Shown one piece after another: positions 8,701-37,212 of a stretch of 42,180 bases of DNA. The translations under genes and the position numbers were made by a program. This stretch comes from Basidiobolus meristosporus CBS 931.73. Taxonomy: Eukaryota > Fungi > Basidiobolomycota. Positions within the stretch are counted from its first letter, which is position 1. Every line of letters starts with the position of its first letter. The notes under the pieces are model-generated. The model made no database searches. It was given only the letters and a program-made list of their open reading frames with translations, and was not told the DNA's origin. The DNA lies in NCBI GenBank assembly GCA_002104905.1, contig MCFE01000721.1:1-42180 (forward strand), in the 5' to 3' direction.

Positions 8701-8706
8701 TTAGCT

Positions 8707-15440: not shown

Positions 15441-15833
15441 AGAGCTGGGTGGAGATGGCATCCTAAAACACTGCCAAGAAACGCAATTGTATACTTTCTT
15501 TAAGGCCATTGCTGAGTTGCAACATTGCAAGCAGTTCTGATTAATGCTCAGTGAGTTTGAGCAAGCCAAAAGCCAGTCTAGCAGGGGTAAATCAAATGTC
15601 TGGCTCTCTATCTGTATCTGAGGGGAATGAGCACTGCTGCCAATATTGGATCATTATCCAAAACTATGATTTCCCAGATACAAGGTTAAGCCTGTAGATC
15701 CCAATGTTATGGGTTTGTAAGTCCTCACTACCACCATAAGTTGCAGTGGTTATTCTGTGAATAAGAAAGCTAGCCAGGAGTAGTTTCCATCATTTGTTAG
15801 AACTAATGCTGACTTTTATGTTCCTGAGTTAAT

Positions 15834-17041
15834 AGACTTGTTCCATTGGATAGTGCCACATTGAGTCATGAGTGCCAAATAGTGCCATAGTGTGCCTGAG
15901 AGCCATAGCAGACCTAAACTTGGCCACAGAGTGTGACATATAGTTCTGCATATTCATGCAAAGCAGCCCCTGTGTTTCACCAACTGTGCAGGAGAAAATC
16001 AATTATTTAATCTTTTTTTTGGGATCAAAACTGTGCATGACATAAAAGAGCACAGACAGACTGAAGATATGCATCTGGTACACAATACCCATGGCACTCT
16101 AAATCTAGCCCCACAGGCTTGTAGCATGTCACAAAAATGCATGGCACTATCTTGGTCCACTGGTACTATCTGGCACTATAAGTGCTTGGTATAGATTCTA
16201 CTTTAGGGCTAATATTTAAATATAGTGCCAGATAGTACCAGTGGACAAAGATAATGCCATGCTTTTTTGTGACATGCTACAAGCCTGTGGGGCTAGATTT
16301 AGAGTGCCATGGGTATTGTGTACCAGATGCATATCTTCAGTCTGTCTGTGCTCTTTTATGTCATGCACAGTTTTGATCCCAAAAAAAAGATTAAATAATT
16401 GATTTTCTCCTGCACAGTAGGTGAAACACAGGGGCTGCTTTGCATGAATATGCAGAACTATATGTGTGAAAATCTATTTTTTGATGTTTTTTTGTGGAAC
16501 AACATTGTGCAGGATTTGCAAGAGCACTAAAGGATTGAAGATATACCTCTGGTACTCAATACCCATGGAACTCTGAATCTAGCTCCTTTGGCTTGTAACA
16601 TGTCGCAAAAATGCATGGCACTATCTTGGTCCACTGGTACTATTTTGCACTATAAGTGCTTTGTATTGATCTTACTTTAGGGCTAATATTCAAATATAGT
16701 GCCTGATAGTACCAGTGGACCAAGATAGTGCCATGCATTTTTGTGACATGCTACAAGCCTGTGGGGCTAGATTTAGAGTGCCATGGGTATTGTGTACCAG
16801 ATGCATATCTTCAGTCTGTCTGTGCTCTTTTATGTCATGCACAGTTTTGATCCCAAAAAAAATATTAAAAAATTGATTTTCTCCTGCACAGTAGGTGAAA
16901 CACAGGGGCTGCTTTGCATGAATATTCAGAACTAGATATCACACTCTGTGGCCAAGTTTAGGTCTGCTATGACTCTCAGGCACACTATGGCGCTATTTGG
17001 CACTCACGGCTCAATATGGCACTATCCAACGGAACAAGTCT
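15834..17041. mobile_element. Palindromic non-autonomous DNA transposon copy F1 (1208 bp, composite), Pangu/PHIS-like
   Basis: Ends AGACTTGTTCC...GGAACAAGTCT; AAT TSD (15831-33 / 17042-44); ~345-bp inverted arms; two central spacers. Confidence 0.92.
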
Positions 17042-18233
17042 AATTCCTACTCTGAGCACAAATAGGAGCAACATGTATTCCTGCCACCATTGATGAGGTA
17101 ATCACTAGCATGGCATCTATTTTAATATAGACAGCCTCCCAATGTCTTTGTTATAAGGACTTTTGCTCTTTTATATTGTCATGAGATGCTTTCTGGCCCT
17201 GCACACTACTGGGTTAGAGTCAAAGGAAATCTTGAAATCTTTTTGCTGGTCAAAGATCCTAAACAAGTACTTTTAAAGTACTTTCCAGCAATCTTTCTAC
17301 ACATATCCAAGCAAATCATGGGGTCTAATTTTCCAGTTTGCCTAAGTGGACACTTATACTCATATATATACTGTCAATATATTCATGTGTGTCTAGGTAA
17401 TCTTAACCTTTGTTGTAGTCATGTTTGAGATTTATTTTCTGCCTAGCATTTTTCAATTCTCAACAACTTAAGCAAGGTCTCCCCTTTCTTACAAAAGGGG
17501 TTTGTGGCTAATGCTCCTTCTAACAGTACAGGTACTATAGCCATCAGGGATCAGAGGAATGGGTGCTTGGGATATTTTGTACCTATATAACAAGTACTGA
17601 GTTTTACTAGGGATCTAGTAGCTGCAGGCTTATAAATTGCCTTACCAAGTGCAGACTATGGCCTTTCCTAGTTGAACCCATGGCTATTGTATTAGGTGGT
17701 GGTAGCATTGTTCTCTAATATAATTTATTAATTGCATCCCATTCTGCCTGCTACAGATCTGCCAACTAATGCAACTAATTGGAAGGTCTGCATTGTTATA
17801 CAGAAGCACTAAGCTTGAGTAATAAGCAATTTGACTAAAAGCTGCATCAACTTAATCATTAAAACTGTGACTCAAATACCTATGATATGTGCAGACTCAA
17901 AATTTTGCTGGTACAATATGGTCAGGCATCTAGTCCATAGTAAAACAGGATTAATACTATTATGGAAGAGACTAGATTCTTATAAAGTGCAAGAGATCAC
18001 TTTAGGTGAGTATGACAGCTCAAATGGTCAAGTTCATTCTTATCCTATATATTGTATACTACTTGACAGCATCAAGCCAAAAAGTCATACTTGTATATAT
18101 ACTTCCAGAACTCTTCAGCAGTAAGGGAAGCTGTAGACAATATCTTAGTAGGTTGGGCCAAGAAATCAACTGACAAATGTTTGCACAAAGTATAAAAGAA
18201 CTATTACTTAGGCAACCACTTAAGAGTTGTAGA

Positions 18234-18600
18234 TGTTATGATTAACCACTTGAATGTTTAAGTCAGATCAGTTTTTAGTCAAATAAACTGGCTTTATGTT
18301 TAGCCTATCAGTAAATCAGTGTTATCTATCAAATCAGTAGTATTAGTCAGGAGATGTATCAGCAGATCCTTATCATACAGAAATAGATATTAAGCAGAGT
18401 TTAATTAGGTGATGATGAGGCAATCAAATTGGTCATCAGCCACAAGCTATATCAGGAAATACAATTAGTGAGCAATTGAGCTGGCATGGTGTATACAAGG
18501 AGCTGCTGGAACTTCAATCAAAATCAGTTCAAGTTTTAGTGAATACAATCCTAGCTAAACTCCCTATTGCCCTGCAACTCTCAAATCAAGACTTGTAACA
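18234..18600 (+). mobile_element. Solo LTR of the gypsy family (367 bp)
   Basis: TGTTATG...TGTAACA; homologous to 31783-32150; 5-bp TSD GTAGA (18229-33 / 18601-05). Confidence 0.92.
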
Positions 18601-20365
18601 GTAGAAGATGCATGCCATAGTTTACCACTTGAGGACATGGAGAAGCTACATCAAAGGAGTCAACTGTACTCTTAAGACTCATCATGCCTCAGTAGAGTAT
18701 ATAAAGATGTAGAGTGTACTATCTGGCAGAATGACAAGATGGAGTGGATACATTCAGCAACCTGACCAGGGGAATGACTACTGCTCTGGGTGAAATAACA
18801 TGCTTGATGACAACTTATTATGACTTCAACAAGTTGCACAGCACAGCATGATGCATGAAGTAGATTGCTCCATCTAATCACAAAGAACTTGGAGAATCAA
18901 GCCATTCCTAAGGAGATGGATGAAGATATCAAGAAGATTATCCAGGATGAAGCCAGCAGGTTTGTAGCACAGGATGAAACACTCTACCATATTGATGATG
19001 GAAGCCCTATTACCTATTGTTGATGGAAGCCCTATTGCCAATTGTCCCTAAGTTGCATGCCTGGAGTCAATACCCAAGCTACACAATGGAAGTAAACATC
19101 TTGGAATTTAAGGAATCTATAGACTTGAGAAAGCTAGAGCATGGTGGCCCAGAATAAACAATACATTGACAAGCTAGTGGAAACATGCCCAAGTGGTCAA
19201 ATTAACCAAAGTTTACCACAGATAATTGCTGAACTTTTTCCCTTAGGGCCAGTGAGAGCATTGGAGAGATGGGAAATCAGCTCTGTTGGAAGACTACCCA
19301 TTACTAGGAAATGCAATCAGTGGATCCCAGTAGCAATTGACCTTACCACCACATGGCCAGAGACAAGAGCCGTACTGGTAGCCAGTAAATGAGAAGTTGC
19401 AAGTTTAATTTTCCATAAGATGCTGATGAAGCTTATACCATATGGAATTCTTATCCAATACAGGAGCAAACTCAATGGCAAAAACATGGCAGCATACCTG
19501 GAAATGCAGCAAATCAAACATTTTAAAACTATGGCATATTACCCTAGCACCAATGAAGCTGCAGAGTAAGTTACTGGATTATTGGGAAAAATGATGACCA
19601 AGTATGAAATGGAGCTGTAGGTAGATGGGACTAGTATATTGATCAAGTACTGTTTGCTGGCAGAGTAAGGGAGCACAACATAACCAAATAATTGCTATTT
19701 ACTTAGTTTATGAATGTGAACCAAGGATTGCAGCAAATCTCATATAACTAAAACTCACTAACAGAATGGAAGATGAGCTCAGTCAGCTTAGTAAGCTCAA
19801 AAGACTTGAACAAAAGTATCAGCAGGCTCAGGCTAAGATATATAACAGTGCAGCAAAGCTGAATTAGAGATTTGCTAAGACTATATCACCAGAAGCATAG
19901 ACAGTTGGGAACGTTGCTTTGCTGCAAAACTGCCCTCAGAAGTGGTTTGAGCTGCAAAGGACAGGACCATTCAAGATCATAAGCAAATGTCCATTTGCAC
20001 CTTACCAACTAGTGGTCAAAAAACAGAATATCCAAAATGATTTAACTCATAACAATGGACTCAAGATTGCAAGACCTACTGGCATTGCTGAATCATCTGT
20101 TTACTGGTATCACTAGAGTAGAGATTCAGGAGAACCCTCTCAGCCTTAGTAGAGAAGAATGCTCTGTTCTATTACTTGAATGTAGAGGTTAAATCATTTC
20201 TTGCCAATGGAATTAGATTTATGTTTAGGCTATCAGTATATCAGTATCATCTATCAGATCAGCAGTGTTGGTCAGCAGATGAATTAGCCAACTTATATCA
20301 GAGAGAAATGGATGTATTAAGTATAATTCAATCAGTTATGATGCTGCAATTATTTTCATTAGTGG
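18601..20365 (+). mobile_element. Old gypsy copy G5: degraded RNase H-integrase, PPT and partial 3' LTR (~20160-20365)
   Basis: Colinear homology with G1 35030-36750; remnants such as RWEISSVGRLPITRKCNQWIPVAID. 17850-18233 may be its RT (weak). Confidence 0.88.
18996..19045 (+). repeat. 25-bp slippage duplication in G5
   Basis: TGATGGAAGCCCTATT(A/G)CC(T/A)ATTGT twice; single copy flanked by ATTGT repeats in G1/G2. Confidence 0.85.
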
Positions 20366-20699
20366 GGATTAAAGCATCTAGCAGATGGCTGCAGGACCTC
20401 CATCTTGGCTCTTGTTCAGCTTTAAAGTATTGCCATAATATACTCTCTACCCTTCAGTGTCCACACAATACCCCAGAAATAGCTCATTTCTACTTATTGA
20501 TTTCAGTTTTGAGTGTGTTTTGTCAGGGATGTAATAGCAACCTCACTGTTAAAGATCCTTCAGTGCTGGAGGTCTAGTTTCTTGCCTGTATATGTTTTTC
20601 TGAGCCTATGCACATATGCATTGTTTTCACCCCAAAACCTGTGGTTAACTTTCCTAGCATGAAGCATAGATCTTCCTATTTCTATTGCTGCTCTGTGAG

Positions 20700-21540
20700 T
20701 ATAATTCTGCCACCCTGTTGTGCTGTAGAATACATGAATCTGTAGTATGTTGCAGTGGAACAGTAGTTGATCAGTGCACTGCTAGCTTCTGTGAGCATTA
20801 TTTCCTTCCATTATCACCTTGTGGCACCTTCAATCTGCACTCAGTTTGTTTTTTTATCATATGTCTGCTGAGCCATATTTTGATTTTTAGGTCATATGCT
20901 CATGAATATCTTGTGTTGTGCTTAGCAACTGCTTACACTATCTCTTGGCTACAAAATACAGTGGTCACAAGGACCATAGTATGTTTGAATGAGCAATATC
21001 CACTATTCTGGTGGTATTAATGCCTCCTGCACTTATGAAGCATTGCCCAGCTTGCCTGCAATATGAGTATCTCCTAAAGACACTCAGTTTTAGTTGTGAA
21101 TGAGTGATAAAGGCCCAAACCAAGCAAATATTTCAGTTATTGGCTCACATCTGTTGCTCAAACTGTCCTGGCATTTTATATCATGTCAATCAGCCAGTTT
21201 CATTAGTTGTAGTGTGTTGACATACTGAAGTACAATGATATGCAGTCAAACTTGTGCATATTATAGTCTTTACTTCTTACACTAAAATTTATCCAGTCTC
21301 ACTTATATTGGGTAGTGGAGCCCAGTAAAAGCCAACAGCTTCAGCTTCTGAGTAGATGTATTACACATTGAGAGTAAGTTGTTAGCTACTCCTGGTACAC
21401 CAAGTTTATCAGGCAGTTTTGCTCTTTTGCTCCAGGCAACTTCTCAAGTCTAGTTATATAATTCCCCTAGCAGTAGCTGACATGAAGATTCCCAAGGTCC
21501 TGACGCCTTGCAGTAATTGCAGCAACCTGATTTTTTTAGG
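20700..21540 (-). mobile_element. Degraded Ty1/copia of a second family (gag knuckle-PR-IN), possibly extending to ~22500
   Basis: On -: CNYCKASGPWESSC (CCHC with H changed to P, ~21485-21530), VPGVAN-NLLS (~21370-21400), DIAHSNI-GP (~20975-21000), KVPQGDNGRKY (~20810-20840), TAQQ-VAE (~20710), in copia order. Confidence 0.7.
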
Positions 21541-22602
21541 CACTATTTATTTCTCTTGCTGCAGGTATACCTTCTGAGCTGGATAAGACATTATCATTGA
21601 TCTTCTTGGCACAGTGTTTGTGTCCAGATTCTGCAGAAAGCCCTCCTTTGACATATTCCAAAGTCAAATGATCATCTTTGCATTTTGATGAAATATTTGC
21701 AGCTCATACATACCTGATAAGCTGCAAAGCAGATAGAGTATTTTATTGAGTCACCTATGCCTGCATCAGCACTGAAAGGTTCTCTGGCAAGTATGTAAAC
21801 TCTGGTAATAAATTTGAACTTCATTTTCTGCTCTTGATCAGCTTGACTCTTCTTGCACTCCCTGGTTCATTGTCCTGGCTTTTGCAGTTATTTCCTGCAA
21901 CTAAGTTCATATAGGTTTTGATACTCTGTCTTCCTTTGTGCTTGTCCTTGTTGGTTCAGCAATCTTATATTAGAGACTCTCATTGCTCAGTGATCACTTC
22001 CAGGTTGTTGCTGAAGTAGCCTTGATTTGACATTCTCAATATTCAAGTCTTTTGCTGTGGCTTCCACTCCAGTGATAAACAGTCTAAGCACATTATTTTA
22101 ATTTTATAGTATATACTGTAAAGTTTCTTCATAATTTCAGTCAGTTCAGACTTTCTCAAGTCTTTCTGTGCCTCCATTGTGTTGGTGAGTTGCCACATCT
22201 TACAGTAAAGTTTTGTCCCAAAGTCAACACACTTTCTTTTAAACAGAGCTTCAAAACCTGACCTTGCTCCAGAAATTACTTTCAATCAATACACTAGCAG
22301 CTTTGGATATGGTAAAGCATTGACTTGTTCAGCAATTAATTCTTGCACTTCTACAAATATGGTATAAACAGCCATTCTTAACATCTCTTAAAGCTTGCCA
22401 ACTTTTTCTGCTGTACTTGTGAGAAAAAGTTCTTCCCACTTTACTAGCCATAAGAGTTTTCTCTTGTCAAGTGAATTTGCATTAAGATATTCCAGTGTTT
22501 GTGACATCTTCCCATCAAACCTGTTGTTACAGGGAGGATACTGTTGTAGTCCTGCTTAGCTTGGATGTTACTTTATGGTTTCTCTATTTCAAAGAGCTCA
22601 AA

Positions 22603-22967
22603 TGATATGATCTACCTCTTGAATGATTAAGTGAGATCAGTTTTAGCCAAGTCAATTTGTTTATGTTTAATCTATCACTATATCAATGGTATCTATCAAA
22701 TCAGTAGTATTAGTAAGCAGATGAATGAGCAGATCCTTATCAGACAGAAATAGATATTAAGTAGAATCTAATTAGATGATGATGAGGCAATCAGATGAGT
22801 CCTCAGCCACTACCAATATCAGATAAAACAACTTGTCAGCAATTGATCTGGGTAAATGTATATAAGGAGCTGCAGAGATAACAACAAAAATCAGTTCAAG
22901 TTTTAGTCAATACAATATTAGCTAAACTCCCTGTTCCTCTACAACTCTTATATCATGACTTTTAACA
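22603..22967 (+). repeat. 5' LTR of G6
   Basis: Homologous to 31783-32150; followed by mutated PBS TTGATAGCA. Confidence 0.9.
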
Positions 22968-24058
22968 TTGATAGCAACAAAAACCAGAAACCCCCCCTGA
23001 AGAAAGAAGAAATCACCCTCAAGATACCAGAAAATCAAGAATGGAAGAATGCTATGCAGCAAATCCTGGCCCAGCAGCACCTGTTACTCCAGATCCTGAG
23101 TCAGCAGCAACAAGGAATGGCTGCCATGGCCTAGAACCAGCAAAACCCTGTTGAGAGCAACTTTAGTGCACAGGTCAACTGGTACCATGGTAGAGTCAAT
23201 GAAAACCTGGGACCTTGGCTCTTTCAGATTGAAGAAGCTTTTAAGGCTAAGGGAATTTCTCCAGAGTGCATGTTGCATGATGCAGCTTCTTAGATGCAGC
23301 TTTACAGTGGTACAACAACACAATCAGGTCAGTCACCATGGTAGGATGCTCTACAATCTCAACCTGGGATGAGCTTGTGTAGTAAATTCAGGATGCTTTT
23401 GAGCCCCTACACCAGCAGACACTACTAAGAAGATGGTTGAAGACACTCAAACAGAAGGGAATAGTTCCAGAGTACATCTATGAATATAGATGTCTACTGG
23501 TGCAAATTAAAATATTCAACCCCCTGGATCAAGTTGAATACATTATTGATAGGTTTAAAGAAAGAACTTGCAAGGAAGTCAGCTACCAAGGACCTCAGGC
23601 TATTGCAGAAGCTATCAAGATTGCCATTGACTATAACTCTGCCATTTCTAGAGTTGGGAAGCCCACAATGACAAATCAGAGAAGCTATAATCACTATAAA
23701 AGAAGACAATTAGAAGCAGTACCAATGAAAATTGACACTATAGGCAAAATCCCACCTCAGAAGAATGTAAGAATAAAGGACTTGCTTTGATTGCCACCAG
23801 CAAGGACATACTGCAAAGTACCACCCTCAGAAAGAAATTAGACACCAGTCAATAAGAACCTTCAACCATATTGAAGCCCTTAAGCAAAGTGACATGGGGG
23901 AAGAGCTTGAAGAAGACTCAGAACCCACCTTCCATATGACAGAAGAATACCTATCCCAAAAGACCTCAAACTCAGAAAGGCTATCATACTGAATGGAGTA
24001 ATCAATGGAGTACCTGCCAAAATCATGATTGACTCAGAATCATAACACAAGTACATGT

Positions 24059-24404
24059 TGTCGGTTATTACTGACTGTATTTGGTGAGTGGGAGGGCTTG
24101 TAGGTCAAGTCAGTACCACTTGGTTCAGAATAGCTTCTGATAGAAGGTAGCAATGTAATAAAGACTTGTGTTTATTCCGTCCAAAATCCTCTTGTCCTCT
24201 CACTTGGGGGCTTAGATAATAGACAATGTGTTATAAAATAGGGGTGTCAGCACCTTCCTGTTATGGTAAGTGTTCTAACTAGATAAGGGCAGGGATAGGA
24301 GGGAGGGTGCATAGGGGAATTATAGGGAGGATACTGGGGGACTTTGGGTAGGACTCTGGGGAGAACTCTTGGGCAATGAGTGGGTACTGCATTTAGTACT
24401 CACA
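24059..24404. mobile_element. Solo LTR of a third, G-rich family (346 bp) inserted in G6 protease
   Basis: TGT...ACA ends; 5-bp TSD CATGT (24054-58 / 24405-09); empty site GTACATGTCAG in G2. Confidence 0.92.
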
Positions 24405-26599
24405 CATGTCAGAGCAATTTGCCTTGAAAGCTGGAATCAATTTGGAGCCCACCAAATCAACTTCAGTCTCAGCAGCTGATGAGAACTCTCACATAATCAA
24501 CCCTACTACTCAGCTAGTAAGAATGATGATCAATGACAATGAAGAAGACCTACAAAACTATATATCTGGGAACTGCATGTTTGACCTTTTACTTGCAAAA
24601 AACCTTGCTATTTTTTTGTAATCCATCAATCAACTGGAGAATCTATGCTGCTCAGAGCCAGAAGGAGAACAAGACCTATGAGCTATTACCTGCCACACTG
24701 AATTTTAACTTGGTCAATCCCAGTGTGTGTGAAACAAGTGAATGGAGCAAGACACAATTCTGTAGGGCACTTAGAAAAGGTACCCAGATGTTCTTCATGG
24801 CAGCATTACAGGAGGATTCCTCTACTCCAGCACCCCAGATGATCCAGACTCTTTTGAGGAAATATTCAGACATATTTCCAGATGACCTTGTAAGCCAACC
24901 CTCACTTAGAGACATGGATCATGCCATTGACACAGAAGATAGCCCCCTAGTGAGTAAGATGCCATACAGAATGAGTCCTTTGGAGTTGGAAGAGATAAAG
25001 AGACAAATAAATCAGTTATTGGAGCAGGGATACATCAAACCTGGCAAGTCACTGTGGGGATCACCAGTATATTTTGTGAAAAAAATGGATGGAACATGTA
25101 GTATGTGCAGTGAATAAAGAGCCCTCAACTCAGTTCCTGACAAATAGGTACCCCATACCTTGTATTGATGAGCTCTTGGACCAACTCAATGGAGGCACTA
25201 TATCCAGCAAGATTGGCCTGGTGTCAGGATACAACTAGATTAGGGTGAGACCAGAAGATATCCCTAAGACAGCATTCAGAACAAGACATGAACATTACAA
25301 GTACTTAGTCATGAGCTTGGCCTTATCAATGCCCCTGCAACATACATGTCATTAATGCAGATAGCCTTCAATAAATACTTAAATATGTTTGTGGTAATCT
25401 ACCTGGATGACATATTGATATACAGCAAGACAGAAGAGGACTACTTGGTGCACATTAAAAGGTCTTCAGGAAGCTAAGAGAGAACAAGAAACATGGCAAG
25501 CTATCAAAGTGTGAATTCTTGAGGAACACATTGAATACCTTCAACACATAGCAACTGGCACAGGAGTGATATTAGACCCCAAGAAGGTTGAAGTCATGAA
25601 GAATCTGACACAGCCATATATCATATCAGAACTTAGATCACTCCTTGAAATGGCTTTCTATTATTGAGATTTGTCAAATCCTATGCAAATAGTACAGCCC
25701 ATTAACTAAGTGCAGCTGTTGGATATTAGTACCAATTGACCATGTCACTAAATGACCAGTGGCTAAAGCTGTACCTGTAGCCAGTAAACAAGGGGTTACA
25801 TGCTTCAGCTACCATAAGATCCTTATGAAGTTTGGATGACCTGTGGAAACATTGTTTGATAGAGGAGCAAGCTTTATGGCTAGAACATTGTAATCTTGCC
25901 TGGAAATGTGCCAGATCAAACACTTGAAAAACTCAGCATATCACCCTAGAATCTATGGTGTCACTGAGCATTAAATGGATTATTTGGAAAAATGCTGACC
26001 AAGTCTGAAAATAGAGCTGTAAGTGGATAGGACAAGTATATAAGCTAAGCACTCACTGCCTGCAGAGTCAGAGTGCATAATCCCACCCAATAATTGCCAT
26101 TTTACTTAGTGTATGGATGTGAACCCAGAATCACAAGAGATCTCACACAGCCAAAGTTTACAGATGCCTTAGATGATGATCTCAGTCAGAAAAGTAGACA
26201 CCAGGAACTGGAACAATGATGTTAAAAGGCACAGGCCAAAGTATGTCAAAGTGCAGAAAGGATGAAGCAGAGATTTGATAAGACTATATCACCAGAAGCA
26301 TTGACAGTTGGGAAGTTTGTATTGCTGAGAAACAAAATCTGGAAGATATTTGAGACACAATGAACAGGACCACTCAAGATCCCCATTGAATGTCCATTTG
26401 CAACTCACAACTGGTGGACAAGCAAGAGAATATCTGGGAGGATTTAGTTGATAAAGATAGAATCAAGCTTGCAAGACCTGATGACAATACTAAACCATTG
26501 AGATAACAGTATCACAAGAAAAGTGATTCAAAAGATCCCTGTCAACTTTAGAAGGGAGGTATGTTATGATTTACGGCTTGAGTATTTAAATGAGAACTT

Positions 26600-26840
26600 T
26601 ACCACAAAAAAAGACAAGCAGAAGCTGTGAAAATGGAAATAGATGCCATGCAGTAGAATCCTGGTTCAGAATAATGCAAGAAGAGAGGTGTTTGTTTCAG
26701 CCACCACAAGCATGGGCATAACTCAAAGTACTGCCCTCAGAGATGAGATGGACAGCAGTTGACAGGAACCTTCAATCATATTAAAGCTCAAGCACATAGT
26801 GAAGTGCAGGATTAACTTGAAGAAGACCTAGAACTCAAAA
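26600..26840 (+). mobile_element. Isolated gypsy gag zinc-knuckle fragment
   Basis: Homologous to G1 ~32890-33120 (atggaaatagatgc...aagtactgccctcagaga). Confidence 0.8.
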
Positions 26841-27117
26841 TTTTTAAAAAAAATACAATAATATTCTAATATTTAAGATGTTGAACAATATTTTATAGCA
26901 TTATCAATAACCACAGCTTCTATCTCACAAATTTGTTTTTGTAATGTTGGATATACATCAAGTTTGGATACTATATGACAGGTGAAAAAGTCTTGCAAGC
27001 ACATGCTGTTTGCCTTTGGTTAAAGTTGATATATACAGTTAAACCGGCATACTATTTTGAGTAAATAAAAATTGGTTTAGACTGTAAAAATCTTTGGTGC
27101 ACCATATATTATATACT

Positions 27118-27849
27118 AGACTTGTTCTGTTGGATAGTGCCACATTGAGCCATGAGTGCCAAATGATGCCATAGTGTGCCAGGGAGGCCAAGTGAGCCTA
27201 CACTTGGCCACAGAGTGTGAAACATAGATCTGCATCTTCATGCAAAGCAGCCCATGTGTTTCACTTATTGTGATGAAGAAAATCCATTTTTTGACTTTTT
27301 TTTAGGTCAATGATGTGCAGGATGTGCAAGAGCACTAAAGGATTGAAGATATACATCTGGTACTCAATACCCATGGCACTCTGGATCTAGCTCCTGTGGC
27401 TTGTAACATGTCACAAAAATGCATGGCACTATCTTGGTCCACTGGTACTATCAGGCACTATATTTGGATATTAGCCCTAAAGTAAGATCAATACAAAGCA
27501 CTTATAGTGCAAAATAGTACCAGTGGACCAAGATAGTGCCATGCATTTTTGCGACATGTTACAAGCCAAAGGAGCTAGATTCAGAGTTCCATGGGTATTG
27601 AGTACCAGAGGTATATCTTCAATCCTTTAGTGCTCTTGCAAATCCTGCACAATATTGTTCCACAAAAAACCATCAAAAAATAGATTCTCTCCTGCATCAC
27701 AGGTGAAACACAGGGGATGCTTTGCATGAAGATGCAGATCTATGTTTCACTCTCTGTGGCCAAGTATAGGCTCACTTGGCCTCTCTGGCACACTATGGCA
27801 TCATTTGGCACTCATGGCTCAATGTGGCACTAGCCAACGGAACAAGTCC
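27118..27849. mobile_element. Palindromic DNA transposon copy F2 (732 bp)
   Basis: AGACTTG...CAAGTCC; ACT TSD (27115-17 / 27850-52); ~345-bp arms around a 42-bp spacer. Confidence 0.93.
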
Positions 27850-28294
27850 ACTTGCTCTATAACATTATCATCATCTATGGGTGGAAATCTGACTGGTATC
27901 ATTGGAATACACTCATCATAATGTAAGCAAAGCTCATTTAAGTTCTTGGGATTATTTACCCATCTTTTGGTACCATCTGTTTTTATTACTACCCCATTTT
28001 TGTTAAATGCATTGCCAAGCAGTTGTTGTACAGATTTGAGTATATATTTATCTAAGTCAGTCATTTATCCAAATTGTGGTACAATACATATATAAAATGA
28101 TGTTGCTACACATCTTATAAAATTTACAACATCACATATAATTTTATTATAAATCAATTCATATAAACCTACAGTGATATACATTGTCAAACGCCTATCA
28201 GCATCATCAGCATCAAGTGTAATACATTGTAAAGTAACTAAATTTACTTTATCACCAATTGGGAATGGATTTTGTAAACCATCAATGTGTAATT

Positions 28295-28666
28295 TGTGGG
28301 TTATTACTGACTGTACTTGGTGAGTGGGACAGCTTGTAGGTCTAGTAAGTACCACTTGGTTTAGAATAGCTTCCAATAGAAGGTAGCAAGGTAATAAAGA
28401 CTTGAGTTTATCCTGTCCAAATCTTGTTGTGCTCTCACTTGGTTCAATTGGATATATATATCACTTGGAGGGGCTTAGATAATAGACAATGTGCTATAAA
28501 ATAGGGGTGTGAACACCTTCCTGTTTTGATAAGTGTTCAAATTAGATAAGGGCAGGAATAGGAGGGAGGACACATGGGGAATCATAGGGAGGATACTGGG
28601 GGACTTTTGGTAGGACTCTGGGGAGAACTTTTGGGCAATAAGTGGGTACAACATTTAGTATTCACA
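28295..28666. mobile_element. Solo LTR of the G-rich family (372 bp) inserted in the GTPase gene
   Basis: TGTG...CACA; 5-bp TSD TAATT (28290-94 / 28667-71); homologous to 24059-24404 with a ~25-bp insertion. Confidence 0.93.
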
Positions 28667-28869
28667 TAATTGTCCTTGATATAACATAGATGCTACAGTA
28701 GATTTGCCTACACCAGTTTTTCCCAATGATATAATTTTTTGTCTTTGTTTTTCCATTATGTATACTAATTTACAATATATATTTACAAAAGGTGCATCAT
28801 TGAAATATGGTTTGTCATATATATTTATAATACATAAGGATTACATAAATTGACATGAATGCTATATTT

Positions 28870-29110
28870 CTGGGTAAAAGACAATTGAGTCCAAGTACAC
28901 AACATTAGGGCAATAGGCAATAGGGCTTTCATCAACAATATGGTAGAGTGTTTCATTCTGTACCATAGGTTTGCTGGCTGACCCTTGATAATCTTCTTGA
29001 TATCTACATTGATCCCAATTGGAATGTATTGGTCCTCCAAGTACTTTTGTAATTAGCCAGACCAATCTAATTCATGCATCAGGCTGCAATGAGCAACTTC
29101 TTCTAGTCTT
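28870..29110 (-). mobile_element. Gypsy RH/IN-linker fragment
   Basis: Homologous to G2 ~40170-40400 (ggcaatagggct...gtagagtgtttca...ataatcttcttgatatc). Confidence 0.8.
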
Positions 29111-29628
29111 GATAAGGGGTCAGTAACCATATTATTTCACCCAGGGCAGTCCTGGAATAATAGACTATTTGGTATCATTAAGCAGCTTGCAATTTACTTA
29201 ACAAGTCTAGACTAGTCTTGGTCACTGTAGGACTAATTTACAGCCCTAACTTTGCCAGCTTCTTCAGATCTATGATCCTATGCCCTATGAAAAGTAATAT
29301 GGTCCCACAGGTGGTTCTAATTCAGATCAGCCATAAGGGTCCCATTGTGAGACCGTTATAATACCAGCAGCTTGGAATTAGTGACCCTTTTAACAATCTT
29401 ATAATGGAATCATAATGGTGTTTTGCTATATTTACTACCAAATAAAGGAATAAAGCTTGACAAGATTTGATTGGTGCTGTGATAGTAATTGCATGGTATT
29501 ATTGCGGTCTTTTTGCGCTCTACAGCTATTTTAAGTGTATCCAAACAGTCAGATATTAAATTATCTTATATGGCAAGAAACTTGACGGTATTTTGATGGC
29601 CTCTCAGCAAGACCCTGATGGCATTATA

Positions 29629-29949
29629 TCAGCAGTATGACAGCCTACACCTGATTTGCTTAATGCTACCATACCAACTTACCAAATGGTATTTCCTTTT
29701 TCTCCCTTCCCTTGTGCAATTCATATACTCCACTGAAGAATCACCCCTCTGTATTGGCTTACCCACTACTACCTTAGTATTCCACATATAGTTTGAATCA
29801 AAAAAAACTATGGCCTCCTGCTTACTAACCTCTACAAATATGCACACCTGCTGCAATTGACATACTTCTATCACCTCAAATATACAGCTTTTTAGTGTAA
29901 TACTTGTTGCAAAAAACCTTGTATTGCTGGTAACATATACATCTTGCAA
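29629..29949 (-). pseudogene. Possible chromodomain-bearing integrase C-terminal remnant
   Basis: VEYMNCTREGRKRKYHLVSWYG resembles chromodomain VExIxxxRxxxxxxxYLVKWxG, preceded by FEVIEV. Confidence 0.3.
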
Positions 29950-30237
29950 ACATATGCCTGGTTGTTGCAGGAATGATTATGCATAAAATATACACAGTAT
30001 GGGCCAGACATGTCTGTTTGTGCCTCAACTTTGGGAACCAAAGAGATTTTGAATGAGTTTTTGCCTCAAATGGCTAATGTGTTAAGTGATATATTAGTTC
30101 AGCTCAGTGGCTTCCAAGAACAATATACACAGGAATCATTCAGCCAACAGTCCCAGAGTATCAGACCAAGGATAGGTGAATACCTTGAGGAATCAGAAGG
30201 TGAGCTTCAAGAGGAAGAATACAGAATGTAAGCAACA

Positions 30238-30828
30238 GTGTCTAGATTGCAAAAGCACTCCTTGCTGGATTTCTTACCATCCCTTGCAACTTCAGCTTGC
30301 TGGTGCACATCAGTTCTAACTATGCCAACACCCTTCACAAGGGTGCCCTGCATTGAGTCAACGCATGCCAGGTTAACACACAGGCTTCAGAGCAAAACTT
30401 CCAGAGCTCACCATACTGCTCATTTAGACATGAGTCCATTGGAGCGGGCCAAGCTGTGTCAACAAGCAGCATCACATCAAACTCAGCCAAGAGCCATGCC
30501 AGAGCTTCAAGTTGCACCTTTACATGCCATGACATCTGACCATCAGCAAGTTTCTTCCGGTGAACTGACTGATGATGACCCACATGAAGTGCCTCCACCA
30601 CTAGAGCCTTTGACAAGTAAAAGAATGCGTCAGCATGTAGCACTCCAGGCCAGCTCAGTAGCATCAGCTGGAGCAAGTAAGTGTGGCCAAGCTGCAGCAT
30701 TTCACTCATCAACCAGGAGGCAAAATACTGACTACAAATACACAAGTAGCCAAGAGGATAGTCAGCAAGGAAGTAGCTTAGGTGTGCAAAGTGAATCACT
30801 ACCAAATACTTCATTAGTAACCCTGTGA
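30238..30828 (+). other. Orphan 196-codon S/Q/A-rich ORF of unknown nature
   Basis: Open frame in a GC-richer island; no recognisable motif; an antisense ORF overlaps it. Confidence 0.2.
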
Positions 30829-31139
30829 GAAAAAAACCTATGAGAAGATGAAGCAATTGCATTGAATTACTATTATTTGTCATGATCCAAATAGCACATT
30901 TTTTTATGCAATCCAAATCAAGCCATTGCAAATCAGCGATCACTAAATTTTTGATATAAGTAACATCAAGGTTGTCTCACATTTGAAACAGAACCCCTAA
31001 AAAAACACTCTGCATATAAATATATCATCTGTTGCCCCAGTGCAGATACTAGATCTGTCTTGCATCTATTTGATTGGTTGTGTGCTAGCTATAACACCTT
31101 GTCCAATCACTAGGATCAGGGATTTACTTGCTTAATGGG

Positions 31140-31560
31140 CAAAATGGGATATTTGATGGCAAATCAGGTAGCTAGTGTATTGGTCAAAGAGCCAATTGGG
31201 GGCTGACAGCTTCAGGATTCTTTAGGACCAATTAACTGCTGAGATACCATCCAATTGGATTGATGGTAACCAAGATGGTAAGTATCAGTATAACCCATAG
31301 TGTGATGTGCATTTATTTCCATTTACATGAAAGAAACATATTCAAATACCAGATTTTACCTATCATTATAGCGGTATCCAATTGCACATGTGATGCAACA
31401 TTACATGTTGGCACAATCATCCGTGCCAACCTCATTGTGTCAGATTGTGCCATAGTGTGCAAGATTATCCCATGCAGTGTAAGATTGTTCAAGAGCAATC
31501 CTGCCTACTGGTAGCTATAATATAGCACCTGGTTGCTCTTAGAGACTGTGGATTGCGCCA
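31140..31560 (+). mobile_element. Ancient gypsy-type RT/RNase H remnant
   Basis: TCDATLHVGTII (cf. TDASxxGIGAVL), VRLFKSNPAY (cf. SRxLxxxExNY), upstream LQxxLGxIN-like. Confidence 0.4.
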
Positions 31561-31589
31561 TGCACCCTGGCAAAATACAATGGAACAAG

Positions 31590-31782
31590 TAAGTTATGTA
31601 GCATTTAATTGAATAATAATGATGCAATTAAATGGGTCATCAGCCACTACCTAGATTGGGAAATACAATTAGTCAGCAGTTGATAAGGTAAAATGATAAT
31701 AAGCAGCTGCTGGAGCATTAATAGAGTCCAGTTCCAGTTTTGGCAGGTACAATACTAGCTAAAATTCCTTTTCCTCTACAAC
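31590..31782 (+). repeat. Older gypsy-family LTR split by G1 (continues at 36941-36963)
   Basis: Homologous to the R/U5 half of the LTR; ...CCTCTACAAC | CAACTCTATCAAGGCTTGTAATA rejoins a U5 end. Confidence 0.88.
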
Positions 31783-32150
31783 TGTTATGATCTGCTGCTT
31801 GAATGTCTAAGTTAGATCAGTTTTTAGTCAAATCAATTAGTATATGTTTAGGTTATCAGTATATCAGTATTATCTATGAAATCAGTAGCATTAGTCAGCA
31901 AATGAATCAGCAGATCCTTATCAGACAGAAATAGATATATTAAGTAGGATCTTATTGGGTGATGATGATGCAATCAAATGAGTCATCAGTCACAACCTAC
32001 ATTAGGAAATACAATTAGTCAGCAATTGATCTGGCAAAATGTATATAAGGAGCTGCTGGAACCTCAATAAAAATCAGTTCAAGTTTTAGTGAATACAATA
32101 CTAGCTAAACTCCCTATTCCTCTACAACTCTTATACCAAGACTTGTAACA
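31783..32150 (+). repeat. 5' LTR of G1
   Basis: TGTTA...TAACA; TATATAA ~32043; AATAAA ~32066. Confidence 0.97.
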
Positions 32151-32151
32151 T

Positions 32152-32160
32152 TGGTAGCAG
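32152..32160 (+). promoter_or_regulatory. PBS TGGTAGCAG, complementary to the 3' end of a tRNA-iMet (...CUGCUACCA)
   Basis: 1 nt after the LTR. Confidence 0.75.
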
Positions 32161-32208
32161 CAATAACCAGAAACCTCCCCCCTGAAGAAAGAAGAAACCA
32201 CCCTCAAG

Positions 32209-33561
32209 ATGTCGGAAAATCAAGAATGGAAGAATGCCATGCAGCAAATCCTGGCCCAACAGCAACAGTTACTCCAGATCCTCAGCCAACAGCAACAAGG
32301 AATGACTACCATGGCTCAGAACCAGCAAAGCCCTGTTAAGAGCAACTTTAGTGTGAAGGTCAACCGGTACCATGGCAGAGTCAATGAAAACCTGGGAACT
32401 TGGCTCTTTCAGATTGAAGAAGCTTTTAAAGCCAAAGGAATTGCTCCAGAAAGCAAGTTGCATTATGCAGCTTCTTACCTGGCAGATGCAGCTTTACAGT
32501 GGTACCATAACAAGATCAGGTCAGCCACTATGATGGGATGCTCTACAATCTCTACCTGGGATGAGTTTGTGTCGGAAATTCAGGATGCTTTTGAACCTCC
32601 ACACCAGCAGACACTACTAAGAAGGAAGTTAAAGACACTCAGACAGAAAGGAATGGTGCAAGAATACATATATGAGTACAGATGTCTACTTGGACAAATT
32701 GAAAGAATGGACCCCTTATATCAAGTTGAATACTTTATTGATGGGTTGAAAGAAAGAACTTGCGAGGAAGTGAATTACCAAAGACCTCAGACTATTGAAG
32801 AAGTCATCAAGATTGCCATTGACTATGACTCAGCTATGTTTGGAGCTGGGAAGCCTACAGTGACTAATCAGAAAGGCTACAATCATTATGAAAGAAGACA
32901 ATCAGAAGCAGTACCAATGGAAATAGATGCTATGCAGAAGAATCCTACCTCAGAAGAATGTAAGAAGAAAGGACTTTGCTTCAATTGCCACCAGCAAGGA
33001 CATATTGCAAAGTACTGCCCTCAGAGAAGAAATGGACACCAGCCAACAAGAACCTTCAACCATATTGAGTCCCATGAACACAGTAATGTGGAAGATGAGC
33101 TTGAAGAAGACTCGGAACTCACCTTCCATATGACAGAAGAGTACTTGTCCCAAATGACCTCAAACTCAGGGAAGTTATTGTACTTGAATGGAGTAATCAA
33201 TGGAGTACCTGCCAAGATCATGATTGACTCAGAAGCATTGCATGAGTACATGTTGGAGCAATTTGCCTTGAAAGCTGGAATCAACTCGGAGCCTACCAAA
33301 TCAACTTCAGTCTCCACAGCTGATGGGAACTCTCACATAATCAACAATATTACCCAGCCAGTAAGAATGAAGATCAATGACTATGAAGAAGACCTACAGG
33401 CTTATATATTTGGGAACTGCAAGTTTGACCTTGTACTTGGAAAAACCTGGCTATTTTGTCGTAATCCATCAATCAACTGGAGAACCCATGCTACTCAGAT
33501 CCAAAAAGACATCAAGACCTATGAGATATTAGACTTGTTCCGTTGGATAGTGCCACATTGA
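32209..33561 (+). CDS. gag: gypsy Gag-protease (450 aa; last ~9 aa and stop supplied by F3)
   Basis: Retrotransposon gag, CFNCHQQGHIAKYC knuckle, protease IDSEA (DSGA decayed). Confidence 0.88.
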   Translation: MSENQEWKNAMQQILAQQQQLLQILSQQQQGMTTMAQNQQSPVKSNFSVKVNRYHGRVNENLGTWLFQIEEAFKAKGIAPESKLHYAASYLADAALQWYHNKIRSATMMGCSTISTWDEFVSEIQDAFEPPHQQTLLRRKLKTLRQKGMVQEYIYEYRCLLGQIERMDPLYQVEYFIDGLKERTCEEVNYQRPQTIEEVIKIAIDYDSAMFGAGKPTVTNQKGYNHYERRQSEAVPMEIDAMQKNPTSEECKKKGLCFNCHQQGHIAKYCPQRRNGHQPTRTFNHIESHEHSNVEDELEEDSELTFHMTEEYLSQMTSNSGKLLYLNGVINGVPAKIMIDSEALHEYMLEQFALKAGINSEPTKSTSVSTADGNSHIINNITQPVRMKINDYEEDLQAYIFGNCKFDLVLGKTWLFCRNPSINWRTHATQIQKDIKTYEILDLFRWIVPH

Positions 33562-34264
33562 GCCATGAGTGCCAAATGATGCCATTGTGTGCCAGAGAGG
33601 CCAAGTGAGCCTCCACCTGGCCACAGAGTGTGAAGCATAGCTCCGCATCTTCATGCAAAGCAGCCCCTGTGTTTCACCCATTGTGTTGGAGAAAATCCAT
33701 TTTTTGACCTTTTTTTTTAGATCAATGTTGTGCAGGATGTGTTAGAGCACAAGCAGATTGAAGATAGGCATCTGGTACTCAATACCTATGGCACTCTGAA
33801 TCTAGCTCCTGTAGCTTGTATCATGTCACAAAAATGAAAGGCACTATCCTGGTCCACTGGTACTATCTGGCACTATATTTAAATATCAGCCCTAAAGTAA
33901 GATCTATACAAAGCACTTATAGTGCCAGATAGTACCAGTGGACCAAGATAGTGCCATTCATTTTTGTGACATGATACAAGCTGCAGGAGCTAGATTCAGA
34001 GTGCCATGGGTACTGAGTACCAGATGCATATCTTCAGTTCTCCTGTGCTCTTACACATCCTGAGCTACATTGATCCACAAAAAAAGGTCAAAAAATGGAT
34101 TTTCTCCTGCGCAATGGGTGAAACACCGGGGCTGCTTTACATGAAGATGCAGAGCTATGTTTCACACTCTGTGGCCAAGTATAGGCTCACTTGACCTCTC
34201 TGGCACACTATGGCATCATTTGGCACTCATGGCTCAATGTGGCGCTATCCAACGGAACAAGTCT
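33531..34264. mobile_element. Palindromic DNA transposon copy F3 (734 bp) inserted in G1
   Basis: AGACTTGTTCCG...CGGAACAAGTCT; ATT TSD (33528-30 / 34265-67); empty site GAGCTATTACCTG in G2 (~41895-41907 on -). Confidence 0.96.
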
Positions 34265-35683
34265 ATTACCTGCCAGGCTGGATTTCATGTCAGGATACAC
34301 CAGATTAGGGTGAAGCCAGAAGACATCCCTAAGACAGCATTCAGGACCAGATATGGACATTACAAGTACTTAGTCATGAGTTTTGGCCTCACCAATGCCC
34401 CTGCAACTTTCATGACCCTGATGCAGACGGTCTTCCAGGAGTACTTAGACAAGTTTGTCATAATCTACCTTGATGATATACTGATATACAGCAAGACAGA
34501 AGAGGATCACTTGGTGCACATTGAAAAGGTCTTGAAGAAGCTAAGAGAGAACAAGCTTTATGGCAAGCTACCCAAGTGTGAATTCTTCAAGGAACACGTA
34601 GAATATCTGGGACACATAGTGACTAGCACTGGAGTAACCGTAGACCCCAAGAAGGTGGAAGTATTCAAGAATTTGAAGCAGCCCCATAGCATATCAGAAC
34701 TCAGATCATTCCTTGGAATGGTTTCCTATTATTGGAGATTTGTCAAGTCTTTTGCAAGTATTGCAGCCCCTTTAACTGATATCCTCAAGAAAGACAATAC
34801 CTACAAGTGGGACATAGCTTGTGAGACTGCCTTCCAGACGCTCAAGAATGAACTTGCTAAGCTGCCAAACTTAAGAATACCAGACTTCAGAAAAGAGCTC
34901 ACTCTGTGCACAGATGCTTCAGATTATGCAATTGGTGGAGTGCTGAGCCAAGAACACAAGGGAAAGGACTACCCTGTTGCCTTTGAATCCAAGAAACTGA
35001 ACTCAGCAGAACAAAACTATCCAGTCCATGAGAAGGAGATGCTTGCTATAATACACTGTTTGAAGACATGGAGATGCTATATTGAAGGAGTCAAATGCAC
35101 TGTGAAGACTGATCATGCCTCCCTCAAGTATATACTTACTCAGAAGGTACTCTCTAGAAGAATGACAAGATGGAGTGAATACATTCAGCAATTTGACCTG
35201 GAGATTGTCTACTCTCCTGGAAAAAACAACACGGTTGCTGATGCCTTATCAAGATTAGATCAAGTTGCACAACTCAACTTGGTGCATGAATCAGATTGGC
35301 CTAGTCTATTACCAAAGTACTTAGAGGACCAAGCCATTCCTAATGAGGTGGATGAAGATATCAAGAAGATAATCCGTGATGAAGCCAGCAAATTTGTTGT
35401 ACAGGATGAAGCACTCTACCAAATTGTTGATGAAAGCCCTATTGCCTATTGTCCATATGTTGCTGGCCTGGATTTAATAAATAAGCTACACAATGGATAT
35501 GGACATCTTGGGATTGAAGGAACCTATAGCCTTGTGAAAGCCAGAGCATGGTGGCCCAGAATGAAACAAGATATTGAGAAGCTAGTGAAAACATGCCCAA
35601 ACTGCCAAATCAATCAAGGCCAGCCACAAAGAGTTGCCAAACTCTTCCCTTTGGAGCCTGTAGGACCATTTCAGAGATGGTGA
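34157..35683 (+). pseudogene. pol: RT C-terminal half + RNase H + IN zinc finger of G1; N-terminal ~36 codons from F3
   Basis: [16 protein letters not shown] and HHCC motifs; TGA at 35681-83 where G2 has GGA. Confidence 0.9.
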
Positions 35684-36562
35684 ACTGACTTTATTGGAAG
35701 ACTGCCAACTACCAGGAAATGCAACTGTTGGATCCTAGTAGCAATTGACCACGCCACTAAATGGCCAGTTGCTAAAGCTGTACCAATAGCCAGTGAACAA
35801 GAAGTTGCAAGTTTCATTTACCATGAGATCCTGATGAAGTTTGGATGCCCTGTGTAGATCTTATCCAATAGAGGTGCAAACTTTATGGTAAAGACTTTAG
35901 AGGCTTACCTGGAAATGCAGAAGATCAGACACTTGAAAACCTTGGCATATCACCCCAGAACTAAAGGAGTCACTGAGCGGTTTAATGGATTATTTGGAAA
36001 AATGCTGACCAAGTATACAAATGGAGTTGTCAGTAGATGGAATGAGTATATAGACCAAGCACTCTTTGCATGCAGAGTCAGAGTACACAACACCACCCAG
36101 CAATCACCATTTTACTTAGTTTATGGATGTGAACCAAGGATTCCAGGAGATCTCACACAACCAAAACTTACAGACACCTTAGAAGATGAACTCAGTCAGC
36201 CAAGTAGACACCAGCAACTGGAACAAAGACGTCAAGAGGCACAGACCAAAGTATCTCAAAGTGCAGAAAAGATGAAGCAGAGATTTGATAAGACTATAGC
36301 ACCAGAAGCATTGATAGTTGGGAACTTTGTATTGCTAAGAAACAACACTCGGAAGAAGTTTGAGCAACAATGGACAGCACCATTCAAGATCATCAGAGAA
36401 TGTCCATTTGCAACTTACCAACTGGTGGACAAACAAGGCAATATCCGGGAAGACTTAGTGCATAGGGACAGACTCAAGCTTGCAAGACTTGCTGATAATA
36501 CTGAACCATCAAGATATTGGTATCACAAGAAGAGAGATTCAGGAGAATCCTCTCTACTTTAG
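35684..36562 (+). pseudogene. pol: Integrase core/C-terminus of G1 with a TAG at ~35854
   Basis: ORF 35885-36562 (AYHPRT, ERFN). Confidence 0.9.
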
Positions 36563-36572
36563 TAGGGGAGAA
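36561..36572 (+). other. Polypurine tract of G1 (AGTAGGGGAGAA)
   Basis: Directly precedes the 3' LTR. Confidence 0.9.
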
Positions 36573-36940
36573 TGCTATGATCTGCCGCTTGAATGTCTAA
36601 GTTAGATCAGTTTTTAGTCAAATCAATTAGTATATGTTTAGGTTATCAGTATATCAGTATTATCTATGAAATCAGTAGCATTAGTCAGCAAATGAATCAG
36701 CAGATCCTTATCAGACAGAAATAGATATAATAAGTAGGATCTTATTGGGTGATGATGATGTAACCAAATGAGTCATCAGCCACAACCTACATTAGGAAAT
36801 ACAATTAGTCAGCAATTGATCTGGCAAAATGTATATAAGGAGCTGCTGGAACCTCAATAAAAATCAGTTCAAGTTTTAGTGAATACAATACTAGCTATAT
36901 TCCCTATTTCTCTACAACTCTTATACCAAGACTTGTAACA
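36573..36940 (+). repeat. 3' LTR of G1
   Basis: Direct repeat of 31783-32150. Confidence 0.97.
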
Positions 36941-37212
36941 CAACTCTATCAAGGCTTGTAATACTACCATTTCTAATATTAATTCTTGTACATTTCACTC
37001 ATATATGCATAACTGAGCATGGCAAAGTTGGGGTTCAGTCACTGAGTGTTTGCTTTACTTGGCAATAGTCAGTCCTCATCTATTCCAGGCACATATAGTA
37101 GATCAGTTGACTTAATGATGCAGCCCTTGAGCTGCAACAAATATTAAGGCTTGCAATCTATTAATAATGGCCTTCTATGTAAGATATCTTTCCAACATTA
37201 TTCTCTTACTGG

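Follow-up and report, generated by a model that had tools for sequence, protein, structure and literature searches.

The window, that is the whole stretch of 42,180 nucleotides that was analysed, is repeat-rich and contains three copies of a foldback element, here called F, each of which is assigned to a separate subfamily (n = 3 subfamilies). The copies and the sites that bear on their history are as follows:

15831-15833 and 17042-17044: AAT target duplication of F1, read from the sequence
15834-17041, minus strand: F1, a composite foldback of 1208 bp, in the orientation opposite to F2 and F3
15834-16180, minus strand: first F1 outer arm, which matches 16695-17041 with a complementarity of 96.3%; next come a loop (16181-16220) and an incomplete inner arm (16221-16461)
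16462-16467, no strand: F1 junction, at most 6 bp of filler, where a truncated F1-type arm meets an F2-type tract
16468-16704, minus strand: F2-type tract in F1, with a partial arm (16468-16654) and a loop (16655-16694)
16695-17041, minus strand: second F1 outer arm
24628-24705, plus strand: older empty paralogous site of F3, in the Gypsy fragment G3 (~85% identical), with one ATT
27115-27117 and 27850-27852: ACT target duplication of F2, read from the sequence
27118-27849, plus strand: F2, 732 bp; left arm 27118-27462, loop 27463-27502, right arm 27503-27849
31783-36940, plus strand: G1, the Ty3/Gypsy LTR retrotransposon hosting F3
33528-33530 and 34265-34267: ATT target duplication of F3, from the sequence and from the single ATT at both empty sites
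33531-34264, plus strand: F3, 734 bp; left arm 33531-33877, loop 33878-33917, right arm 33918-34264
41883-41912, minus strand: empty paralogous site of F3, in the Gypsy copy G2; 29 of 30 bases equal the joined flanks, with one ATT

F2 and F3 have the ends AGACTTGTTCCGTTGG...CCAACGGAACAAGTC(T/C), and the end sequence common to the family is AGACTTGTTCC. A search of the window with AGACTTGTTCCGTTGGATAGTGCC returned six termini with 0-2 mismatches, against a chance expectation of 0. These pair into three elements (15834/17041, 27118/27849 and 33531/34264), in agreement with a first-pass annotation of this DNA that had described ends of the form AGACTTG...CAAGTC(T/C). Five of the six termini start with AGACTTG and the remaining one with GGACTTG. 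The perfect 3-bp duplications reported for all three copies were recovered when the sequence was read again: the flanking triplets are AAT/AAT at F1, ACT/ACT at F2 and ATT/ATT at F3. All three fit A-N-T, a rule drawn from n = 3 insertions with empty-site confirmation for one duplication only, that of F3. Given random flanks with ~31% A and ~31% T, an A..T arrangement in all three would be expected by chance with a probability of ~0.001. The same annotation gave the copies a common length of ~730 bp, which applies to F2 and F3 and fails for F1, whose 1208 bp equal ~1.65 F units. When the three copies were compared with the window by BLAST, no further copies or fragments of F appeared, and a script searching the window for other A-N-T-flanked elements with terminal inverted repeats (TIRs) returned just F3 and artefacts from inverted retrotransposon copies. 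In pattern scans, a 24-bp F terminus had 0 matches in metagenome contigs, and a 27-bp conserved arm core had 0 matches in metagenome, viral and prokaryotic genome collections.

F3 lies within the pol region of G1. The LTRs of this retrotransposon (31783-32150 and 36573-36940) show 9 mismatches over 368 bp (97.6% alike, 2.45% different), and its own target duplication is CAAC, 4 bp. The F3 insertion, its exact ends and its 3-bp duplication are proven by the two empty sites: a single ATT stands in G2, from which the duplication had originally been deduced, and the second, older site in G3 agrees. The insertion of G1 is an upper age limit for that of F3. The proposal that the family was active after G1 had inserted is therefore borne out, F3 being inside a retrotransposon with its own 4-bp duplication and missing from two paralogues. 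Empty sites for F1 and F2 were not found within the window.

The architecture of the element is that of an almost complete hairpin. In F2 and F3, inverted arms of 345-347 bp surround a loop that measures 40 bp; the arm length of ~345 bp given earlier thus stands, while the 42-bp spacer is corrected. Arm sequence makes up 94.6% of the element, as anticipated by the ~94% that had been judged able to fold back. F2 has arms that are 90.4% complementary and F3 arms that are 91.4% complementary; in F1 the outer arms reach 96.3%. The predicted hairpin energy is -600 kcal/mol for RNA (z -45) and -363 kcal/mol for DNA (z -80). Of the suggestion that read-through transcripts would form long dsRNA, it is the folding potential that these predictions support. 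Tandem repeat analysis of the arms with TRF detected a weak 10- and 19-bp subterminal periodicity and nothing stronger. Subterminal (A)GTGCCA repeats are also present in F (corrected P ~0.02 for a motif chosen post hoc). The absence of coding capacity is upheld: no ORF longer than 59 aa lies inside F2, the copy for which ORFs of this length were listed, and neither a reverse transcriptase nor a transposase was found inside the elements. Nor was a transposase found in the window, where Pfam scans of 20 ORFs gave Gypsy and Copia domains only; Rfam and tRNA scans of the window gave no matches. F has the features by which miniature inverted-repeat elements (MITEs) and other non-autonomous TIR elements are recognised: it is short and non-coding, has inverted repeats and a target duplication, and occurs in several copies with evidence of insertion.

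What do the arms tell us about the history of the family? Arm identity is 96.3% inside F1 as against 82-84% between F1 and F2/F3, and 27 positions are altered identically in both F1 arms. The true pairing of arms ranks first among 15 possible pairings. Subfamily-specific changes occur in both arms and along the entire arm length. Such mirrored changes could stem from subfamily history alone, without conversion from arm to arm. The arms of F3 differ by 8.6%, compared with 2.45% for the G1 LTRs; they were already ~6% mismatched when F3 inserted. F3 was mobile with mismatched arms, and therefore perfect arms are unnecessary for movement.

F1 preserves a different kind of event. It is a chimera, in which a tract of 240-290 bp derives from the F2 lineage: the tract is 98.4% identical to the F2 right arm and has 10 of the 12 private variants of that arm in common with it, and a switch point lies somewhere in 16704-16759. 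A simple nesting of one F in another is rejected, since the length would then be ~1471 bp rather than 1208 bp and the inner arms are truncated. The structure suggests break repair with template switching. A more ambitious scenario extends this idea to the whole family and sees in the long arms more than a passive relic: F palindromes would break time and again, with either the opposite arm of the broken copy or a neighbouring copy serving as template for resynthesis, and small RNAs from read-through of copies placed like F3 would restrain a coding Pangu family. We judge it unlikely; if true, resynthesis of the palindromes would both keep the arms matched and generate new subfamilies and composites like F1.

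A related and distinctly unlikely proposal is that the hairpin is functional and that selection, or arm-to-arm conversion in a strand that has snapped back, keeps its arms matched. A role would then fall to the folded molecule, DNA or RNA, either as an aid to mobilisation or as a source of hairpin RNA or small RNAs acting on a coding partner, like maize Mu killer. The mirroring of substitutions over the full arm length would suit this proposal, as would the scarcity of arm mismatches near the loop and at the ends, the extreme stability of the predicted fold and the location of F3 in the sense strand of a retrotransposon capable of read-through. However, in F2 and F3 the two arms of one copy resemble each other (90-91%) no better than arms from different copies do (87-91%), and these two copies thus give no hint of homogenisation still at work. 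Moreover, the mirrored sites are subfamily-level, and master copies with near-perfect arms account for them.

Taken together, these observations lead us to interpret F as probably a foldback, non-autonomous and MITE-like, that stems from a Pangu-group DNA transposon of the cut-and-paste type. The Pangu group belongs to the PHIS (PIF/Harbinger-ISL2EU-Spy) superfamily; 5'-ANT-3' duplications are its defining feature, and its TIRs usually begin with AG or GG (PMC4482050); in part of Repbase it carries the alias Harbinger2 (Han et al., Mob DNA 2015, PMC4482050). Pangu elements occur in fungi, animals and algae, and a non-coding derivative is exemplified by the 199-bp Pangu_PStr (PMC4482050). The duplications of F are AAT, ACT and ATT (n = 3), and all six of its termini start with AG or GG. 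Read from the sequence, these two features and the multiple non-coding copies argue for the Pangu-type foldback assignment originally put forward. The arms of F, at 345-347 bp, are about ten times longer than published Pangu TIRs, whose 11-40 bp are a descriptive range and not a condition of membership (PMC4482050). Arm length is no bar to membership, because long TIRs exist in other PHIS groups; that of ISL2EU_CJap is 259 bp (PMC4482050). F is probably a new family of an already described kind of transposon. Among the 34 Pangu families that have been tabulated, none comes from Zoopagomycota or other early-diverging fungi, and the survey that defined the group was transposase-based and itself states that riders of this kind could be missed (PMC4482050).

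Could the A-N-T flanks be a coincidence? F might come from another superfamily with 3-bp duplications, such as CMC/CACTA-Chapaev, Zator, Academ or classical PIF/Harbinger with relaxed targeting, a reading helped by the fact that just three duplications are readable and that the window contains no transposase linked with F. We consider it highly improbable: chance would place A-N-T at all three flanks at only the rate of ~0.001 given above, and the termini begin with AG or GG as in Pangu, not with CACTA or GGG (PMC4482050). The TWA target of classical PIF/Harbinger is likewise unlike the ACT and AAT/ATT of F. Hardly any credence can be given to a TA duplication of the Tc1/mariner or Stowaway-like type, in which F would end GACTTG...CAAGTC and the junctions would read TA|GACTTG...CAAGTC|TA. 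The junctions of F1 and F3 are compatible with this reading, but the right end of F2 has CA instead of TA, and the empty sites in G2 and G3 are GAGCTATTACCTG, whereas the TA model needs an empty site 3 bp longer. A TA duplication is excluded for F3 because alignment to the empty sites requires removal of exactly one ATT; at the G2 site the TA model scores 68 against 72 for the 3-bp model. Membership of Tc1/mariner or Stowaway is accordingly rejected, the empty sites demanding 3 bp. Palindromes can arise in long-read assemblies and the structure of F1 is odd, but we attach practically no weight to an assembly or local-duplication artefact, which for F2 and F3 is refuted by dispersed copies with differing flanks and a 3-bp duplication each, by arms that have diverged by 4-10% rather than being identical, and by the two empty sites.

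How would a Pangu-type foldback of this shape move and diversify? Decisive for membership of the Pangu group would be mobilisation by, or derivation from, an element with the same ends that encodes a DDE transposase (DDE_Tnp_4 / DDE_Tnp_1_6) of the Pangu clade, usually together with a second ORF. A DDE transposase encoded at another locus of the genome, probably assisted by a partner protein, would act on F in trans, binding the conserved AGACTTGTTCCGTTGG ends and the subterminal (A)GTGCCA repeats. F would be excised and inserted at an A-N-T target by a 3-bp staggered cut, whose repair would leave the 3-bp duplication. The 347-bp arms may go back to one end of an element that was duplicated in inverted orientation. 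The ancestor of each subfamily would be a master copy with near-perfectly matched arms, which would explain why subfamily changes are present in both arms. Breaks in the palindromes may be repaired off other copies, and one such repair may have produced the composite F1.

For annotation of the locus, this model explains three insertions: one lies in the pol of a retrotransposon, and another, F2, interrupts a host ORF on the minus strand. The best protein matches of the 929-aa Gypsy pol are ~50% identical (Calcarisporiella, Absidia, Mucor, Entomortierella, plants and rotifers, in a word-index search), and an exact look-up of two window ORFs found no identical sequence on record. F3 provides a clean, empty-site-verified case of A-N-T targeting by a putative Pangu-type element, apparently in an early-diverging fungus. 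If the assignment is correct, the Pangu group is able to yield almost fully palindromic riders. The copies may also preserve a record of palindrome repair, and one of them holds a tract derived from its neighbour. The known working of such transposons is unchanged by F.

How does F relate to other known elements? Tourist-like MITEs of classical PIF/Harbinger resemble it in being small, non-coding and multi-copy, with a 3-bp duplication. They are mobilised in trans through a two-protein DDE system. They differ from F in their TWA (TTA/TAA) target and short TIRs, as against an A-N-T target and very long arms. Bacterial insertion sequences of the IS5 family have the A-N-T target in common with Pangu (PMC4482050), but they are prokaryotic and coding and have short inverted repeats. 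In shape, F resembles the two-TIR copies of Galileo (P superfamily) and Drosophila FB, which likewise consist almost entirely of two long inverted arms (PMC3573991). Galileo also has subfamilies distinguished by arm sequence and chimeric copies with the inner region of another subfamily, which have been attributed to conversion or ectopic recombination (PMC3573991); F1 is a direct parallel to these chimeras. However, Galileo makes a 7-bp duplication, not the 3-bp A-N-T duplication of F, and the arms of FB and Galileo hold long tandem subrepeats where F has only its weak periodicity (PMC3573991). A FB/Galileo-type identity (7-9-bp duplications, P or MULE-related, subrepeat arms) is rejected: the likeness is one of shape only. 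With the Pangu group F shares the 3-bp 5'-ANT-3' duplication, confirmed here by an empty site, the AG/GG ends and the existence of non-coding derivatives; it departs from the published families, with their 11-40-bp TIRs, in devoting 94.6% of its length to arms of 347 bp (PMC4482050).

A search of the window with the 24-bp terminus AGACTTGTTCCGTTGGATAGTGCC (in short, AGACTTGTTCC) returned six sites at two mismatches or fewer, where none is expected by chance. These sites form three inward-facing pairs, which delimit the copies of F, a hairpin-like, non-coding transposon family:

15834-17041, minus strand: F1, terminus pair 15834/17041
27118-27849, plus strand: F2, 732 bp, terminus pair 27118/27849
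33531-34264, plus strand: F3, 734 bp, terminus pair 33531/34264

BLAST with the three elements as queries found no further F-family sequence in the window. F2 and F3 each comprise two arms of 345-347 bp flanking a 40-bp non-palindromic loop; the arms make up ~94.6% of the element and are 90.4% (F2) and 91.4% (F3) complementary. The first-pass annotation had described three ~730-bp copies with ~345-bp arms and a 42-bp spacer: the arms and the sizes of F2 and F3 hold, but the loop is 40 bp and F1 is a longer composite. As RNA, F3 is predicted to fold into a single continuous hairpin (-600 kcal/mol versus -210 for shuffles, z -45), and the predicted fold of F2 as DNA reaches -363 kcal/mol (z -80). 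No ORF longer than 59 aa is present inside F2. The sole CpG of the arm consensus lies in the terminus (TTCCGTTGG), and the two variant termini, TTCTG and CCATT, read as the TpG and CpA decay products of this CpG, expected in so CpG-poor a genome. CpG observed/expected across the window is 0.08 versus 1.12 for GpC, and this extreme depletion spans all of its repeats.

The window (42,180 bp, 37-43% G+C) consists of nested repeats nearly throughout, with Pfam matches to Copia gag and RT pieces within the first 12.6 kb and to Ty3/Gypsy gag, protease, RT, RNase H and integrase at 32-42 kb. Positions 1-12600 form a dense Copia-type nest in both orientations, whose copies are 89-97% alike and whose gag (4738-5958) and RT pieces look intact. 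In a protein search the Gypsy pol has its best full-length match in Calcarisporiella (53% identity, 98% of the query), with relatives from the Mucorales and Mortierellales ranking next, which is loosely consistent with an early-diverging fungus. The window holds no tRNA genes by tRNA scan and no Rfam matches.

The flanking triplets, read from the sequence, are AAT at F1, ACT at F2 and ATT at F3, which bears out the earlier claim of ANT-type 3-bp duplications. F3 sits in the pol region of G1, a Ty3/Gypsy copy (31783-36940, plus strand), and its empty site occurs twice: in G2, an inverted paralogue of G1, where a single ATT is read straight through (41883-41912, minus strand), as the first-pass annotation had noted, and in the older Gypsy fragment G3, again with a single ATT (24628-24705). 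Filled and empty sites align without gaps only when the element and one ATT are taken out, so the ends of F3 are AGACTTG...CAAGTCT. A TA duplication with GACTTG ends is ruled out by the same empty sites. Empty sites for F1 or F2 are absent from the window. When the F2 site is restored to its empty state, the minus-strand host ORF reads on through it in the sole frame that is open, which hints at insertion of F2. This ORF (MTDLDKYILK...IDDDNVIEQ; 27039-28064, minus strand), split by F2, stays in frame for 26 codons over the restored site, and its 81-aa and 103-aa pieces have no Pfam match at E 0.01.

G1 is a true insertion: TG...CA LTRs bound it (31783-32150 and 36573-36940), a 4-bp duplication, CAAC, flanks it, and its target was an LTR belonging to a related, older Gypsy element (31594-31788, 36941-36972). 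The two G1 flanks, once joined, give an LTR-end-like sequence. Between the two G1 LTRs there are 9 differences in 368 positions (2.45%), and F3, because it lies inside G1, is younger than that insertion, in agreement with the proposal that F was active after G1 arrived. The F3 arms are mismatched at 30 of 347 positions (8.6%), of which, assuming a common rate, at most ~8-9 arose in place; F3 therefore moved with arms already ~6% mismatched, and we infer that mobility of F does not need perfect palindromy. G1 is without 516 bp of RT-coding sequence present in G2 (34268-34300 versus 41349-41880, minus strand). This deletion, which shows TCA microhomology at its junction, begins 20 bp beyond the right end of F3; it could represent a repair scar connected with F3 or be mere chance.

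How did the arms diverge? In a six-arm alignment (both outer arms of F1 and both arms of F2 and F3), the true arm pairing ranks best of 15 possible. The F1 outer arms are 96.3% alike mutually and 82-84% like any F2 or F3 arm, and 27 positions, from 48 to 282, depart from the majority identically in both; F2 and F3 have nine such mirrored positions each. F2 and F3 arms, by contrast, differ as much within a copy (90-91% identity) as between copies (87-91%). Arm mismatches cluster mid-arm (positions 116-230), with few of them next to the loop. The simplest reading would be that each subfamily stems from a master with near-perfect arms, its copies then decaying arm by arm. Active arm-to-arm conversion could possibly have produced the mirrored changes, but the arm data do not require it.

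F1 has the following layout, given in the orientation of F2 and F3:

16695-17041: full left arm
16655-16694: first loop
16468-16654: partial right arm, inner 187 bp
16462-16467: filler, up to 6 bp
16221-16461: partial left arm, inner 241 bp
16181-16220: second loop
15834-16180: full right arm

In this layout TRF detects a 474-bp period with a copy number of 2.0. In sequence type, the first loop together with the partial right arm of F1 belongs with F2 and not with F1: identity to the F2 right arm is 98.4%, and 10 of the 12 variants found in that F2 arm alone are shared. The F2 copy itself is inverted relative to F1 and 10.4 kb distant, and the switch into the F2-type tract falls within a stretch identical between the types (16704-16759). 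This structure fits a repair product, in which a break in the element was mended by copying other copies with template switches; given the intact AAT duplication around F1, this could have occurred at the present site. The structure may instead be an assembly error. Nested insertion fits neither the length nor the truncations.

Each arm carries (A)GTGCCA at 20, 39, (49) and 59 from its end, and its inverse, TGGCAC, close to the loop. In the subterminal region TRF finds 19-bp and 10-bp periods, the repeats lying 19-20 bp apart at arm positions 19-64 (e.g. 33549-33594 and 34201-34243). They are kept in both arms of all three subfamilies, and their enrichment has P ~0.02 after correction for picking the best 6-mer. 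Either the transposase or its partner protein might bind this array, a plausible candidate set of protein-binding sites.

Pangu elements, a group within the PHIS (PIF/Harbinger-ISL2EU-Spy) superfamily, make 5'-ANT-3' duplications, as paralogous empty sites have verified, have TIRs of 11-40 bp usually starting with AG or GG, and in autonomous copies encode two ORFs, one a DDE transposase (Han et al. 2015, PMC4482050). In F, ANT duplications flank 3/3 copies (chance ~0.001 for random flanks) and AG or GG begins 6/6 termini, which supports the earlier reading of a Pangu-type non-autonomous foldback. Pfam scans of 20 ORFs found no transposase ORF in the window. F arms are ~10 times longer than the TIRs reported for Pangu, a length that is not itself a criterion, and a 259-bp TIR is documented in another PHIS group (PMC4482050). 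By that paper's own remark, its transposase-based search would overlook MITEs (PMC4482050). The sequence features support placing F, a non-autonomous element that is palindromic almost throughout, in the already described Pangu/PHIS kind; it is new, as far as can be told, as a family and not as a kind. Galileo foldback elements include chimeric copies with an inner region derived from another subfamily, and the explanation given for these matches the pattern in F1 (PMC3573991). Precedents exist alike for foldback riders with long arms, for mirrored changes in the arms and for chimeric copies.
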